Origin: Takakia lepidozioides
Taxonomy: Eukaryota > Plantae > Bryophyta
Assembly: GCA_030704615.1 (NCBI GenBank)
Contig: CM060733.1
Coordinates: 34,968,001-35,032,000 of the forward strand
Length of the DNA stretch: 64,000 nucleotides
Reading direction: 5' to 3'
Position numbers and translations under genes: made by a program. Under the pieces are notes generated by a model. It had not been told where the DNA came from. It saw nothing but the letters and a program-made list of their open reading frames with translations, and did not search any database. Positions 2 to 55,329 of the stretch are shown here, piece by piece. Position 1 is the first letter of the stretch, and the number at the start of each line of letters is the position of its first letter.

Positions 2-763
2 CCCCAAACCCCTAGGAGGGGTCGGCTTCTTCCTAGGTTTCCTCCCCTTCGGCTTGGGCGGCCTGAGCCGGATCCTCGCCCCCGATGGGAAGCGCATAGG
101 ACTATGATACTGAGGACCGTCCAGCCTCGTTGTTGGGGGAATCATCTCGACCCTCCCACCCCCATCCGAGAAAATGTGGAGTTTGAGTATTGGGGGAGAC
201 GGTATGTTGTGAGAGCCGCTACACACCCTGCTATGGGTCGGGATTTATTCACGGTCAATGATATTGTGGTTCATCCTCGGAGAAACAACATGGTGGACTT
301 GTTTCCCTACTCCGGTCCATACTACACCTCCGCGGAGTTCCGTACATTATGCCTCGAAGCCCCATACATCCTACCCTACATTTTGTGTATCAACGGACAG
401 GATGTACGTAGACGGGGGTTGTCTCCCATTGAGATCAGATTTTGTGATGGTGACCCCGACATCTTCGGCAATGTTGCTGGGCTAGTCAATAGTTCTTTTG
501 GTCATCCTAGGAGAACCAATGTAATATGGGACGAGCGAAGCGATGGGCATGAGAGCTTTTGTGGTCATACGTCAGTATACTGTGAGGGGATGTACATGTT
601 TGTGATGACCTATGCTAGTAGGACTATTAGGGCTGGCAGCGAACTATTTGCATCATACGAGTTTTCTCGGGATGATTGGGACCTCCGATTACAGCGTGAG
701 TGGGATGTGTATGATAAAAATAGGGTTCCTTTGAGACAGGGATCGCGTAGAGGGGCATTGTAG
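2..763 (+). CDS. SET-domain protein, intronless in the window and 5'-open (the frame has no stop from base 2; first Met at 104)
   Basis: SET motifs in order: MGRDLFTVNDI (GxGLFAxxDI-like), FPYSG, CDGDPDIFGNVAGLVNSS (DA..GN.ARFINHS-like), TNV, YASRTIRAGSELFASY (AxRxIxxGEELxxxY). No post-SET Cys cluster. Confidence 0.7.
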   Translation, partial: PQTPRRGRLLPRFPPLRLGRPEPDPRPRWEAHRTMILRTVQPRCWGNHLDPPTPIRENVEFEYWGRRYVVRAATHPAMGRDLFTVNDIVVHPRRNNMVDLFPYSGPYYTSAEFRTLCLEAPYILPYILCINGQDVRRRGLSPIEIRFCDGDPDIFGNVAGLVNSSFGHPRRTNVIWDERSDGHESFCGHTSVYCEGMYMFVMTYASRTIRAGSELFASYEFSRDDWDLRLQREWDVYDKNRVPLRQGSRRGAL

Positions 764-1679: not shown

Positions 1680-2250
1680 CACTACAACAGATCACGGTAT
1701 ATATGACTGTATATATTACTATCCCGTAGTCATAAACGGTATATATGACTGCAATGACTTTAAGTCGTGCAAACCAAGTGAATACAATGAGTACAGTATG
1801 GTCGGTCATGGATGACTGCAGTAAGATGAACCAAGTGATACATCTCACTGTCATGTGGTAGTCATATGTACTTCTACCATACATGACTTAGTGTGCTGCT
1901 GCAAACTGTACACGTGTCTCATTTTAATAAGTCCAGGAGGTTTTCGTGGATGTGCGCCATATGACGTCTCCAAAAATTGACACGTGGCATATTATGAGGA
2001 GGCCTTGCAATCATTATCCTGACTGTCAACATACTAATATCTGGACACGTGGCATTGTATGATTATTATTATTTAAATATAAAAATATTTAAAGTCATTC
2101 CCATGACTAAGCCTGTAGGAGCTTATCGCCATGTGTTTTTCCAGGATATGACACATGTCAATGTATGATGTGATGTGTAGTAGTCATGGTATGGTACCTA
2201 CTGTAAAGTGGTTTGTTGGGTTGGACGCATGCCATCAAATTAGTTGTTTG
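1680..2250 (+). mobile_element. Non-autonomous CACTA element 2, first terminus with subterminal repeats
   Basis: Starts CACTACAACAGATCACGGTATATATGACT at 1680, preceded by ATT. Dense ATGACT/AGTCAT motifs in both orientations. Inner boundary approximate. Confidence 0.8.
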
Positions 2251-4109: not shown

Positions 4110-6140
4110 TTGGTTACGGTTGTGTTCAGAACGACATCTGGTACAATTCCGGCTTTGATGTTATCCCCATGCACCTCTTTGCCCTTGTCCCGGGCTTCAC
4201 CCCTACCCCCATCATTTGCTCATAGGTCTCCAAAGCCTCCATCCCACGTCCCTGCTGTGCATACCCTGCAAGCATCGCACTCCACGACACCACATCTCGT
4301 TCAGCCTTAGTGTTGAACATTCCCTTTGCATCCTCGATGCACCCACATTTTGCATACATGTCCACCAGGGTATTGTTCAGAATGACATTTGGTACAATTC
4401 CAGCTCTAAAGATGTCGCCATGGACCTCTTAAATCCCCTTTTCCAGAGCTGCCCAGGCAGTGTTCCGAATGACATTTGGTACAATTCCAGCTTTGATGAT
4501 ATCCCCATGCACCTCTTTGCCCTTCTCCAGGGTTGCCAGACTTGCACAAGCATTGCAAATGCACACAAACATGATGTGGCCGGGCTTCACCCCTTCCCCC
4601 ATCATTTGCTCATAGGTCTCCAAAGACTCCATCCCATGTCCCTGCAAGCATCGCACGCCACAACACCACATCTCGTTCAACCATTGTGTTGAACACTGCA
4701 TCCTCGATGCACCCACATTTTGCATACATGTCCACCAGGGTATTGTTCAGAATGACATTTGGTACAATTCCAGCTCTGAAAATGTCGCCATGACCTCTTT
4801 CCCCTTTTCCAGAGCTGCCAGGGCAATGTTCATGATGACATTTGGTACAATTCCAGCTTTGATGATATCTCCCCTTTTCCAGAGCTACCAGGCAGTGTTC
4901 CGAATGACATAAATTGGTAAAATTCCAGCTTTGATGATATCCCCATGCACCTCTTTGCCCTTCTCCAGGGCTGCCAGACTTGCACAAGCAATGCAAATGC
5001 ACACAAACACCCCATCATTTGCTCATAGGTCTCCAAAGCCTCCATCCCACATCCCTGTTGTGCATAGTGCAAACCCTGCAAGCATCACACTCCACGACGT
5101 CACCACATTTCGTTCAGCCATAGTGTCAAAAAATCCCTTTCCATCCTCAATGCATCCACATTTGGCATACATGTCCAGGTCAGGGCAGTGTTCAGAATGA
5201 CATATGGCACCTGCAATTCCAGCTTTGACCGATGTCACCATGGACCTCGTTCCCCTTTTCCAGGCTTGTGCACGCATTGCAAACACATACAAACACGATG
5301 TGGTTGGGCTTCACCCCTTCGCGCATCATTTGCTCACAAGTCTCCATAGCATTCGTACCACGTCCATGCTTGGTAATCCTGCCAACATTATATTCCACGT
5401 GATCAAAGATCGTTGAGGCATTATGTGTTGAACACTTGGTGATCATCCATGATGCTCCCCTTAACATATATGTTGACGAGGTTGTTGAGTAGAAAAACGT
5501 TCGGCGTGAATCCACTTTGGACAATGTGAGTGTGCACCTGCTTTCCAAACATGTTCACCAGGGTATTGTTCAGAATGACATCTGGTACAATTCCAGCTCT
5601 GAAGATGTCGCCATGGACCTCTTTCCCCTTTTCCAAAGCTGTCAGGGCAGTGTTCAGATTGACATTTGGCACAATTCCAGCTTTGATGTCCCCATGCACC
5701 TATTGCCCTTCTCCAGGGCTGCCAGGCTTGCACAAGCATTGCAAATGCACACAAACATGATGTGCTTCCCCCATCCTTTGCTCATAGGTCTCTAAAGCCT
5801 CCATCCCACGTCCCTGCCGTGCATACCCTGCAAGCATCGCACTCCACGACACCACATCTCGTTCAGCCATAGTGTGGAACACTCCTTTTGCATCCTAGAT
5901 GCACCCACATTTTGCATACATGTCCACCAGGGTATGGTTCAGAATGACATTTGGTACAATTCCAGCTCTGAAGCTGTCGCCATGGACCTCTTTCCCCTTT
6001 TCCAGAGCTACCAGGGCAGTGTTCATAATGACATTTGGTACAATTCCAGCTTTCATGATACCCCATGCACTTCTTTGCCCTTGTCTAGGGCTCAATGCGC
6101 CCACATTTTGCATACATGTCCACCAGGATATGGTTCAGAA
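4110..6140 (-). pseudogene. Scrambled PLS-class PPR pseudogene fragments
   Basis: Repeated motifs LVDMYAKCGCIEDA, ERDVVSWSAMLAGYAQQGRGMEALETYEQM and ALEKGKEVHGDIIKAGIVPNV across shifting frames, with many frameshifts. Confidence 0.85.
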
Positions 6141-15034: not shown

Positions 15035-17670
15035 TGTTGTGTCATGGAACGCGATGATCGCAGGATAGGGCGTGGGATGGAGGCTTTGCATTGAGCTACT
15101 GATGCGGGGCGAAGCGCAAACTGCGCCGCAACCGCAATGGGCTCTTGGCTCATGTTAGTACCATGATGTGGTATTCTTCATGATGTTTACAAGGTTCTTG
15201 GGAGAGTCAGCTTGGTCTTAGCAGTCCGTGTTTCAATTTTACCTTTGTGGAAAAGGGTAAAAAGGTCCATGGTGACATTGTCAAATTTAGGGTATCCAGA
15301 AACAGGTAACAGAGGCAGTATTGAGGATACAAAGGTCCGAGTGTTTGAGAATATGCTAAACGAACCTAGAGTGTGATGATCGCGGGATATGCCCCAGCAT
15401 GGATGCGGGATGGAAGCCCTTGGAGACCTATGAGCAAATGATGCGGGAAGGGGTAAAGGCATACCTAGTCACGTCCGTTTGTAGATGCAATGCGTGTGCG
15501 AGCCCGACAGCCCTGGAAAAGGGCAAAGAGGTCCACGTTGACATCATCAAAGGTGGAATTGTACCAGATGTCATTCCGAACGATACCCTGGTAGACATGT
15601 ATGCCAAATGTGCCAGCATCGAAGTTGTAAAGGGAAGACAAATACTGCTTCCATTGAGCGTTTTCATCTGTCTTCCTAGTGCAGAGGCTTGGGGGCAACA
15701 CACTACAACACAATCCTGTTTTATGAACGAGCATTGATCACGTGGATTTAATGATGACAGGATTCTTCTTCGACTTGTTTCAGCTTGTTTTGCCCTCTCA
15801 TCAGACTCGGCCCTGAATTGCTCGACGGAGCAAAGCTGACATGAGGGTTTTACATATCCTTCACAATGGTGGGACAACCGCGATCGCAAGGTGTGGCTTT
15901 TTCTTAATGTACAATGTGAAGAAGTTTGTCTATCCTGCAAATGGCTCTTGGCTCTTGGCAGGAAAGCTGGAAAGCAGGTGCACACTCACATTGTCCAAAG
16001 TGGATTCACGGCGAACGTTTTTCTATTCAACACCCTTGTCAACATGTATGTTAAGGGGAGCATCATCGATGATCACCAAGTGTTCAACACAGAATGCCTC
16101 AGTGATCTTTGATCACGTGGAATATAATCTTGGCAGGATTTACCAAGCATGGGCGTGGTATGAATGCATTGGAGACCTGTGAGCAAATAATGCGCTAAGG
16201 GGTGAAGCCCAACCACATCACGTTTGTTTGTGCTTGCAATGCGTGTGCAAGCCTGGAAAAGGGGAAAGAGGACCATGGTGACATCGGTCAAAGCTGGAAT
16301 CGCACCAGATGTCATTCTGAACACTGCCCTGACCTGGACATGTATGCCAAATGTGGATGCATTGAGGATGCAAAGGGAGTTTCCGACTCTATGGCTGAAC
16401 GAGATGTGGTGTTGTGGAGTGCAATGCTTGCAGGGTATGCACCAGTGTTGGGCGGTTCTTGCCTTTGTGAAGGAACCTTCGGTTTCGGTCCACAAATTTT
16501 TGAAGAGACGGTTCGGGATCCGGATCCGGTTATTTTTTATTAAGGCGGTTCCGGTCCGGTTCAGGTTCCGACTTTTTAACATGGGGGCGGTTCCGGTTAC
16601 CGGTTAGTTGCTGGGAAAAAAACACCGGTTCCGGTTAGGTTCCGGTTCTTTTTTAAAAATATATTAAATTCTTTTAATTTTTTATTCTTCTGGAAAATTA
16701 GATGAACTGATCTGATTGGTCATACTGAGAATTTTCAACTAAAACCAGGGAATTTATTAGTAAAACAGAAGTAAATAAACTTATATGTTTTTTGTGATTG
16801 TCTTTTATGGTATATATAACTAGTTATATACGCATGGTCTCCATTAAAAACGGAAAACCAGAGATTTTATAAGTTGTTGTACGGTGTAGCAAAGAACAAC
16901 TAAAACAAACTAACTACATAAGGATCTTAATTCAAAATACAAAACAAATTAAACATGTGTAATTCTATGGTTACCTTTTATGGTGCAGCAAAAGCACAAC
17001 TAAAAAAAACTACATAAATTTGGACCGGAACCGGAACCGCTTTGGAGCTGGAACCGCCGGTTCCCACACATGTGGTCGTAGCTGGAACCGCCGGTTCCGG
17101 TTCCCACACAATCCCCAATGAGCGGTTCCGGTTCTGCACAGGCGGGTCCGGTTCCGGTCCGGTTCCACATAACCGGAACCGGAACCGGTTACCTGGGGCC
17201 AGGCGGGTAACCACCCAACACTGGTATGCACAACAGGGACGTGGGATGGAGGCTTTGGAGACCTATGATCCAATGATGGGGGAGGGGGTGAAGCCCGACC
17301 ACTTTGTGTGCATTTGCAATGCTTGTGCAAGCCTGGCAGCCCTACACAAGGGCAAAGAGGTGCATGGGGATATCATCAAAGCTGGAATTGTACCAAATGT
17401 CATTCGGAACACTGCCCTGGCAGCTCTGGAAAAGGGGAAAGAGGCCCTTGGTGACATCTTCAAAGCTGGAATTGTACCAAATGTCATTCTGAACCATACC
17501 CTGGTGGACATGTATGCGAAATGTGGGTGCATCGAGCATGGACAAGGGCAAAAGGTGCATGGGGTATCATCAAAGCTGGATTTGTACCAAATGTCATTAT
17601 GTACACTGCCCTGGCAGCTCTGGAAAAGGGGAAAGAGGTCCACGGCGACATCTTCAGAGCTGGAATCTAA
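15035..17670 (+). pseudogene. PLS-class PPR pseudogene fragments, inverted paralogue of 4110-6140
   Basis: Same PPR motifs. 15970-16440 is closely similar to the reverse complement of ~5080-5550 (GKQVHTHIVQSGFT...). Confidence 0.85.
16443..17223. mobile_element. Non-autonomous hAT element (781 bp) inserted in a PPR fragment
   Basis: TIRs CAGTGTTGGGCGGTT and AACCACCCAACACTG. Perfect 8-bp TSD GTATGCAC at 16435-16442 and 17224-17231. Subterminal CCGGTT/AACCGG arrays around an AT-rich core. The PPR reading GYA|QQGRG is restored on removal. Confidence 0.93.
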
Positions 17671-18379
17671 GAAAAGATTGTGTACTCTCTCAGGCATTCT
17701 CAATCTGGACACCTAAAGCTGGATAGAGCGACGACCTGGACGGATCCCCGCAGACCTCTCTTATCAATAGTGCCTGCTCCAGCGACAGAGAAATCAGACA
17801 GCTTGACAACTCATTTTTTGGTTTCTTCGGGCAGTCTGGGCAGATTCCAAAGAGCTATTCGCTTTCAAGGGATAATTTTTGAGGGTGAGGGTGAGTGCAG
17901 TGTTTACAGAGGCAGAGGAGTACAAAACAAAGGCACAAAAATTGGGGTCATCAGGCCTGGCGCTTCACTATGCCAACATTATCAATCAAATTGACAACTT
18001 AGTCTAGCTTTACCTCTTTTGAGTGAATTTATGATATGCAAATTTTTGTCTCTCCATGTGTTTCTAGGATGTCACAATAGTTCTCTCTCCAGATGTTATG
18101 TCACCATAGCCTAGACGCTTTACTGTATACTTCTGTTTCTCTTTTTCCAGCTGACTTGTCATTCCAAACGCCAACCAGACTAACAGAAAAGAGATTCACA
18201 TGACCTTTTTGGCAGGTGTCAAGACCTAACTCGGTGCCACCAAACACCAGGGACACACTGTACCAAGGTTTGCCCCGACTTTGAAGGCCTCTCTGCGCAA
18301 TCGCTTACAGCAAAACTCCAAAAGGATGAGGTATACTACGTTTTCTTTTTATCTTTGTTTCTCTCCCTTTCTATACGTA

Positions 18380-53820: not shown

Positions 53821-53851
53821 GCATTTTCTGGCTTCTCGTTTTTTGTCGAAT

Positions 53852-53871
53852 GGTGTTTCTAAACACCACCA
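53852..53871 (+). promoter_or_regulatory. Histone 3'-UTR stem-loop-like element
   Basis: GGTGTT-TCTA-AACACC followed by ACCA, starting 31 nt after the H4 stop. Confidence 0.65.
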
Positions 53872-55329
53872 GCTACAGGAAGTTCAGTCTTCTCAATGCT
53901 CGATGCAACAAACGTTTCCCGATCTCACAAGTTGTAGGGTGTTGTTGCTTGTAGAGAATGTTACCTGTCCATCTGTTGTAGAGGGTCATAAATTAAACGC
54001 TGACGTGAGCATCATTCTGAGCGGTGGCCTGATGTTGTAGGACCATCAAGCATCAGACGGGTAAATCGTCTCTCTGTTTGCTGGAATGGCAGCTTAATGG
54101 GCACGATTGTAAGCTTGAAGTTGTAAGTTGCTCATTTCAGTTTGAGGCACGTCTTGTCGAGGTGTGTGTGTGTGTGTGTGTTTATAACAGTGACGCACGT
54201 CCACATGTCATGTCGACCTAGAAACTTATGGCAAACTGTGCTATATATGCTAAGAAAAAATTCTTGCAAAGTGGAGGAGCAAACAGCAGACCCTAGTGGA
54301 GGATGAGACTGGAGGGAACATGGGCTGAAACCCCCTGCTTGCATTGATCTCACTGTGTATGGATTTTTTTGCGCCCTTGTTCTTTCTGCCCTCCCTTCCC
54401 AATGGAGTGGACATATTTGGGGCGTGATTTGCTGACTGAGGATATTCTTGATTAGTGATTTAGAGCATCATGACTGACAGATTGTCTGTGCACCATGACT
54501 ACTCCGGAAGATGTGCCGCCCAGCCCATGGCCTGCTTTCACATGATTTCGCTTAGAATACTTGGACTCAATGATAAAGTTGACCTAATGTCACTGCTTTT
54601 TCTACAAACGGTGTCTTTGTGGAGACAGCAGCATCTTAGTTTTGAACAATATATTTGGCCAGGTTCTTGCAATTTCTCCCTGAGAAGAACTGAGATTCAG
54701 CCTTTTAAGTAGCTTGCAGACTTTCACCCCTGAGTCAGGTAAGCACTCTTCAGCCTGATGGGTGGGTCTCCAAGGGCATTTGCTTCCACTAGTGACAGCC
54801 GCATTGCACTTGCAGAGCAAAAATGACATGTTTCTAGGCCTCTAAGAGCCACTGCTTGATCAATGAAACTGTTTCAGAAAGCCCTGACACTCTTGGGAGG
54901 AAGGTTCATGGTCTACTTCTGATCTTTCTTAGGTCAGATTGAAGGTAAAATATGGCCTTGCAAATCCTGAGTTCCAAGAGAGAAAAAGAAAGCCACACAA
55001 ATGCTCAAATGGGCATCTTGTGCGCTCTACTCCCTTTGACCTCAATATGTGTGAGGGTAATAGCTTCGAAATTTGAATCCACCAGTGTCATGTATACTTT
55101 TAGGCTGAGTGGGGATAAATTAAAGTCCACTACAAAAATTTCTGTGATTGGCCTGAAAACAACTGTGTTCTTGATATAAATCAATCCCCAGAGGGTTTTA
55201 CCTGTTGTAAGTGAGAATTCTGTGGAAGGCACACTAAACTGCTGTCTTAAGAGCTAGCTGTTGATAGAAGGTTAACGGCTATGACACAATTTGGATTTCT
55301 CCTCTACACAGTGTGGGGTATCACAACTT

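Follow-up and report, generated by a model that had tools for sequence, protein, structure and literature searches.

The histone H4 gene in the window, that is, the whole 64-kb stretch of DNA analysed here, is expressed and carries in its 3' UTR a stem-loop of the green or algal type (GGUGUU-NNUN-AACACC), in what is a non-flowering land plant of bryophyte type. Based on sequence comparisons, we conclude that this hairpin is homologous to the histone stem-loop of algae and protists and is held by selection, not present by chance. As to its use, the reading that we prefer, with a probability of about 0.62, is that an SLBP-binding stem-loop would direct cleavage after ACCA, giving a poly(A)-less H4 mRNA, and that transcripts escaping cleavage would be polyadenylated near 54.28 kb. 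What is new here is that a stem-loop-bearing H4 gene gives read-through transcripts, seen as contigs in two independent transcriptome-like runs.

Textbooks long described land plants as polyadenylating their histone mRNAs, with the stem-loop/SLBP system ending at the green algae. Work of 2026 overturned this view for a moss, a fern and a cycad: poly(A)-less histone mRNAs were described in Physcomitrium patens, Adiantum capillus-veneris and Cycas debaoensis, where 33 of 51 such genes carry an RF00032 stem-loop and SLBP is present, SLBP having been lost in Selaginella and angiosperms (Genome Biol 2026, PMC13130582). According to the same study, some genes yield both a poly(A)-less and a polyadenylated isoform, in moss, fern and cycad alike; its sampling comprised one bryophyte and no liverworts, hornworts or other mosses. 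A survey of 25,998 plant histone CDS reported conserved stem-loops in bryophytes and gymnosperms, together with LSM10, LSM11 and FLASH in land plants (bioRxiv 10.64898/2026.10.14.759114, October 2026), and our literature search found no paper pairing Marchantia with SLBP, or liverworts with histone stem-loops. The phenomenon itself has already been described, and the H4 gene of the window is a clean further example of it, in which every base of the algal-type stem has been retained by an H4 gene of bryophyte type. The locus is a convenient test case for the competition between stem-loop cleavage and polyadenylation in plants, and raises no new question by itself.

The H4 gene and its 3' stem-loop

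The H4 gene is the sole histone gene in the 64-kb window, and its product of 103 residues is a standard plant H4, the identical protein being present in 10348 blocks of a public collection and 100% identical to the H4 of 16 metagenomic loci. The features of the gene and of its 3' region are as follows:

53443-53508, + strand: probable H4 5' UTR; its 5' limit is approximate, 53443 being where contig X2 (record 9) stops, 66 nt upstream of the ATG, and not a mapped cap site
53509-53820, + strand: histone H4 gene, intronless, 103 codons plus a TGA stop (from the ORF and the sequence)
53509-53817 and 53818-53820, + strand: H4 CDS and stop codon (from the ORF)
53821-53851, + strand: spacer of 31 nt from stop codon to stem, ending in GAAT (53848-53851), which flanks the stem-loop on its 5' side
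53852-53867, + strand: stem-loop core GGTGTT/TCTA/AACACC, with a 6-bp stem and a 4-nt loop
53852-53857, 53858-53861 and 53862-53867, + strand: 5' arm GGTGTT, loop TCTA and 3' arm AACACC
53868-53871, + strand: ACCA 3' flank (from the sequence)
53876-53882, + strand: CAGGAAG tract, 5 nt past ACCA
53876-53895, + strand: candidate downstream element, CAGGAAG and then TTCAGTCTTCTC, loosely like the C-N-G-G ... TCG-CTCTT region of relatives
53872-54281, + strand: read-through part of the long 3' UTR, from transcript contigs that end at ~54276-54281

All the details given by the sequence-only reading, namely a perfect 6-bp stem starting with GG, the UCUA loop, ACCA, CAGGAAG and the CGAAT flank, 31 nt after the stop, were correct on re-reading. 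The hairpin lies on the sense strand at +31 nt, inside the zone of ~25-60 nt past a core-histone stop where histone stem-loops are expected, and GGTGTT TCTA AACACC has the corresponding geometry, with two basal G-C pairs (GG-CC), a loop closed by U-A, and U as the first and third base of that loop. The bases read by SLBP in animals are kept (second stem G, U-A closing pair, loop U1/U3 and the ACC flank), the first three being reportedly the binding determinants in the structure of the animal complex of Tan et al. 2013. The 5' flank is CGAAU and not AAA, two of the three A being present. By analogy with the animal system the cleavage site is predicted to be the end of ACCA (53871).

In RNAfold predictions the hairpin forms in the MFE structure as well as in the centroid structure, and the flanking U and A lengthen the stem to 7 bp. 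Such a seventh pair is possible in two related loci as well, the bases before and after the stem being U-A in the window (53851/53868), U-G in L024 (1530/1547) and U-A in L043 (1545/1562).

Recurrence of the stem behind H4 genes

The H4 loci compared comprised 80 loci from metagenome contigs and nine from NCBI assemblies encoding the identical protein; the latter, which came from an exact-protein look-up, are the assemblies with the longest contigs, and none has the hairpin, so that they were used as controls. Forty of the 80 metagenomic loci encode an animal-type H4 (I61V and R78K), are not distinguishable from animal or human DNA, and were left out of the hairpin comparison. Seven further distinct metagenomic loci have the same 12-nt stem downstream of H4, at +27 to +89 nt from the stop, and three more loci have compensated stems:

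GGTGTT/AACACC with a plant-identical H4 protein: L024 at +31, loop TTTG; L043 (the same sequence as L047) at +33, loop CTTG
GGTGTT/AACACC with other non-animal H4 variants: L015 at +27, L030 at +55, L042 at +43, L051 at +89, L079 at +54
Compensated stems: L020 and L033, GGTTTC/GAAACC; L067, GGATTT/AAATCC

The sequence-only reading had counted a lack of such hairpins in orthologues against a stem-loop system; what the comparison revealed is this repeated occurrence. The stems of L024 and L043 are preceded by TCTAAT and that of the window by TCGAAT, AAT being common to all three. The coding identity of these two loci to the window is 0.80-0.81, and their 3' UTRs cannot be aligned with that of the window except for the hairpin and its immediate flanks. 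Directly 3' of the stem, ten of the 11 aligned sequences have AC, L024 differing with GCC, and seven have ACC.

The covariation called for by the sequence-only reading was found in part. Across the 11 aligned rows, both partners vary in three of the six pairs and no pair is broken, although the rows were picked as hairpins and the 100% pairing follows by construction from that choice. Row selection does not explain why one exact 12-nt stem recurs behind H4. Moreover, a GG..CC hairpin of 6/4/6 type within 300-400 nt past the stop was found in none of 25 control plant-type H4 loci (nine from NCBI assemblies and 16 metagenomic).

Rfam and covariance model searches

The Histone3 model of Rfam (RF00032) aligns over its full length to 53847-53893, with 21.6 bits and an E value of 0.002 in a search of 601 nt against 4227 families at a permissive threshold. 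The scan with this model, which the sequence-only reading had suggested, thus returned a full-length match that lies below the gathering score of 34, and at the gathering threshold no Rfam match was obtained in the whole window. Algal-type relatives also stay below 34 with this model (24.1 and 21.6 bits for L025, 19.6 bits for L042). Because RF00032 is dominated by animal sequences, a sub-threshold score weakens formal Rfam membership, not homology. In a permissive Rfam scan of 20 plant-type H4 loci only the GC-rich algal L025 and L042 were matched, and L024, L043 and L047 were missed; weighted towards animals, the model detects the green-type stem-loop poorly. In L025, a GC-rich alga-like H4 locus, the sub-threshold Histone3 matches are located at 67-112 (- strand) and 1785-1831 (+ strand), neither directly behind the H4 stop, and are probably those of adjacent genes in a histone cluster.

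A simple degenerate DNA pattern gave matches across the window that were not above chance, the site itself excepted. Covariance model R1 re-found its training rows alone and nothing further in the window or in 32 loci, indicating that the window holds no second copy of the stem-loop. With the leave-one-out covariance model R2, built from five relatives with the window excluded, 53842-53898 ranked first over both strands (128 kb), with 17.5 bits and a rough E value of 0.014.

The homology of the hairpin and its maintenance by selection are thus argued from the identical stem at the same place in otherwise unalignable loci, the compensated variants, the hairpin-free controls and the leave-one-out ranking. 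On this homology, and not on an Rfam threshold, the element may be filed as a histone 3' stem-loop of non-metazoan type. The first three of these observations support the proposal of the sequence-only reading that an ancestral 3'-end system based on the stem-loop, or what is left of it, may persist in this lineage; that the hairpin is used as an mRNA end is what we infer beyond them.

The region downstream of the stem

In five green-type relatives, invariant CTG and TCG triplets stand 5-7 nt apart, 9-25 nt behind the stem, and are followed by a C/T-rich run, e.g. CTGGGATTTGTCGCTCTTTC. The CTG...TCG regions of these loci are:

L024: 1547-1579
L043: 1562-1594
L042: 1572-1598
L020: 732-764
L033: 619-651

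The window is without the CTG and TCG triplets and retains the pattern of the relatives only loosely (CAGGAAGTTCAGTCTTCTC, 53876-53895). Its purine-rich tract is the short CAGGAAG, whereas the pattern of the relatives differs and is partly pyrimidine-rich; a clear counterpart of the animal purine-rich element was not found behind the window stem. The CTG...TCG pattern, which is unlike that animal element, could be a green-lineage downstream processing element or else the noise of a small sample.

Transcripts of the H4 gene

Contigs covering most of the stretch were obtained from two runs on one organism (coded A), which come from two studies and are recorded as 'RNA?'. Both runs are probably transcriptomes rather than DNA runs, as suggested by contig totals of 33-49 Mb, a depth of 79-116 on the H4 gene and contig starts 24-66 nt before ATG codons. 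In X1 (record 1) and in X2 (record 9), a single colinear contig extends from the H4 5' UTR through the hairpin to ~54276-54281, running 131 and 126 nt, respectively, past 54150. Three substitutions and one 2-nt insertion set the contigs apart from the window sequence, and all of these lie outside the hairpin. The H4 gene is therefore expressed, and read-through transcripts exist in which the hairpin lies inside a 3' UTR of ~460 nt; this holds for at least some transcripts.

The contigs end 15-25 nt past the A-rich tract AAGAAAAAA (54252-54260), and the end at ~54276-54281 would correspond to a plant poly(A) site, the tail itself not being visible in contigs. A (GT)n microsatellite is located inside the read-through 3' UTR, at ~54163-54183.

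H4 paralogues are also represented in these runs, by contigs that extend 284-792 nt past the stops, and the depth of the H4 gene contig is similar to theirs. One paralogue 3' UTR end, of which 30 letters are visible and which stops just before the expected stem, reads TTCTAA, like the flank of L024 and L043; as a likeness in sequence this may be taken as suggestive, not as evidence.

Polyadenylation of H4 transcripts only far downstream had been named by the sequence-only reading as speaking against a stem-loop system. The contigs do run on through the hairpin for ~410 nt, which counts against such a system, but contigs cannot reveal an RNA ending at the hairpin: they show no ends, tails, strand or local depth, and libraries of this kind are usually poly(A)-selected, so that RNAs ending at the hairpin are neither shown nor excluded.

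Surroundings of the H4 gene

Upstream of H4, neither the histone promoter motifs typical of flowering plants (Oct, Hex, Nona) nor a CCAAT, TATA or E2F consensus was found within 600 nt (52900-53508). A (CT)n run is present at ~53397-53412, and at 52984-53244 (- strand), ~265 nt away from the ATG of H4, there is a divergent first exon that encodes a LisH-like motif (LLQEQYLLTAFELLHELQEDG). In X1 the contig connects this exon with the H4 transcript region, which points to a very short common promoter region or to overlapping 5' ends.

Farther away, at 4216-5002 and 15428-17716, there are several broken ORFs on both strands with the wording of PLS-type pentatricopeptide repeats, e.g. GIVPNVILNNTLVDMYAKCGCIE, which resemble pieces of PPR genes that have decayed or been repeated. 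Long ORFs of a degenerate short peptide repeat (GYRG/RVTW-type) at 30847-32516 (- strand) reflect a dense short DNA repeat.

Possible roles of the stem-loop

In the reading that we prefer, SLBP would bind the hairpin during S phase and machinery of the LSm11/FLASH/CPSF73 type would cut just past ACCA, so that the H4 mRNA would lack poly(A), like the histone mRNAs measured in the moss, the fern and the cycad. Uncut transcripts would run on and be polyadenylated ~410 nt downstream, and it is this form that would be seen in the available transcriptome contigs.

Alternatively, the conserved hairpin, bound by SLBP or by another factor, may have an internal role in the 3' UTR (in translation, stability or the cell cycle), with all of the mRNA polyadenylated downstream, a real possibility although an unlikely one. 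The colinear contigs from two studies are consistent with such a role, as are the long 3' UTRs of the paralogues and the loss from the window of the triplets kept in relatives; in addition, Cycas panzhihuaensis retains an SLBP gene, yet all its histone mRNAs are polyadenylated (PMC13130582). However, the runs are probably poly(A)-selected and hence blind to poly(A)-less RNA, and depth is one figure per contig, so that a drop past the hairpin would be invisible. Furthermore, the histone genes with a stem-loop are for the most part poly(A)-less in Physcomitrium, the single bryophyte sampled (PMC13130582), and ACCA is retained at the expected cleavage position.

A bolder proposal, which we regard as distinctly unlikely, is that the stem-loop acts mainly inside a polyadenylated H4 mRNA as an SLBP-bound internal 3'-UTR element, cleavage at the hairpin being weak or conditional since the downstream CTG...TCG was lost. 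On this view the gene would be a surviving intermediate on the way from stem-loop-ended to polyadenylated histone mRNAs, and the pattern of the relatives would be the green-lineage counterpart of the U7-binding element.

It is very improbable that the hairpin is a decaying relic, that is, an ancestral stem-loop without function and not yet mutated away. An Rfam score below the cut-off, a non-canonical 5' flank and a weak downstream element would agree with decay, but the stem is perfect and identical at 12 of 12 positions to that of distant loci in which the adjacent UTR is unalignable and the H4 CDS is ~20% different. Loop U1/U3 and the ACC flank are also retained, and a neutral 16-mer would not outlast such divergence.

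A chance hairpin unrelated to histone stem-loops is practically refuted: short hairpins are common, with ~1.9 of the GG-start 6/4/6 type with any loop expected per window in first-order Markov simulations, but those with loop U1/U3 are expected only 0.125 times per window (both strands, 128 kb), this is the only GG-start perfect hairpin with a 6-bp stem and a 4-nt loop on both strands of the window, it stands on the sense strand behind the only histone gene, in a zone of ~40 nt past the stop where the chance of one such hairpin is of the order of 4e-5, and its exact stem recurs behind H4 in the seven other loci.

Comparison with known systems

Compared with the SLBP-bound metazoan stem-loop (RF00032, Histone3), the window element is alike in its position 25-60 nt past the stop, its 6-bp stem and 4-nt loop, the GG...CC base, the U-A closure, loop U1/U3, the ACC(A) 3' flank and the match to the full length of the model. 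It is unlike in its inner stem, UGU versus the animal pyrimidine run (GGYYYU), in its 5' flank, GAAU versus AAA, in having no clear purine-rich U7-binding element, and in its score of 21.6 versus 34. Animal stem-loops also have an unpaired A on both sides, whereas in the window the flanking U and A can form a seventh pair.

The genes of Physcomitrium, Adiantum and Cycas debaoensis resemble that of the window in belonging to non-flowering land plants and in having an RF00032-type stem-loop behind a core histone gene; poly(A)-less RNA was measured there, whereas the window H4 is known here from read-through contigs.

As for the green-type and protist metagenomic loci, the green-type relatives keep CTG...TCG downstream, whereas the window does not, and the loops of the ten loci (L015, L020, L024, L030, L033, L042, L043, L051, L067 and L079) are TTTG, CTTG, TTTT, AATT, TTTC or ATTT, versus TCTA in the window. 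Seven of these ten share the stem of the window, and L024 is the only one of the ten without AC after the stem.
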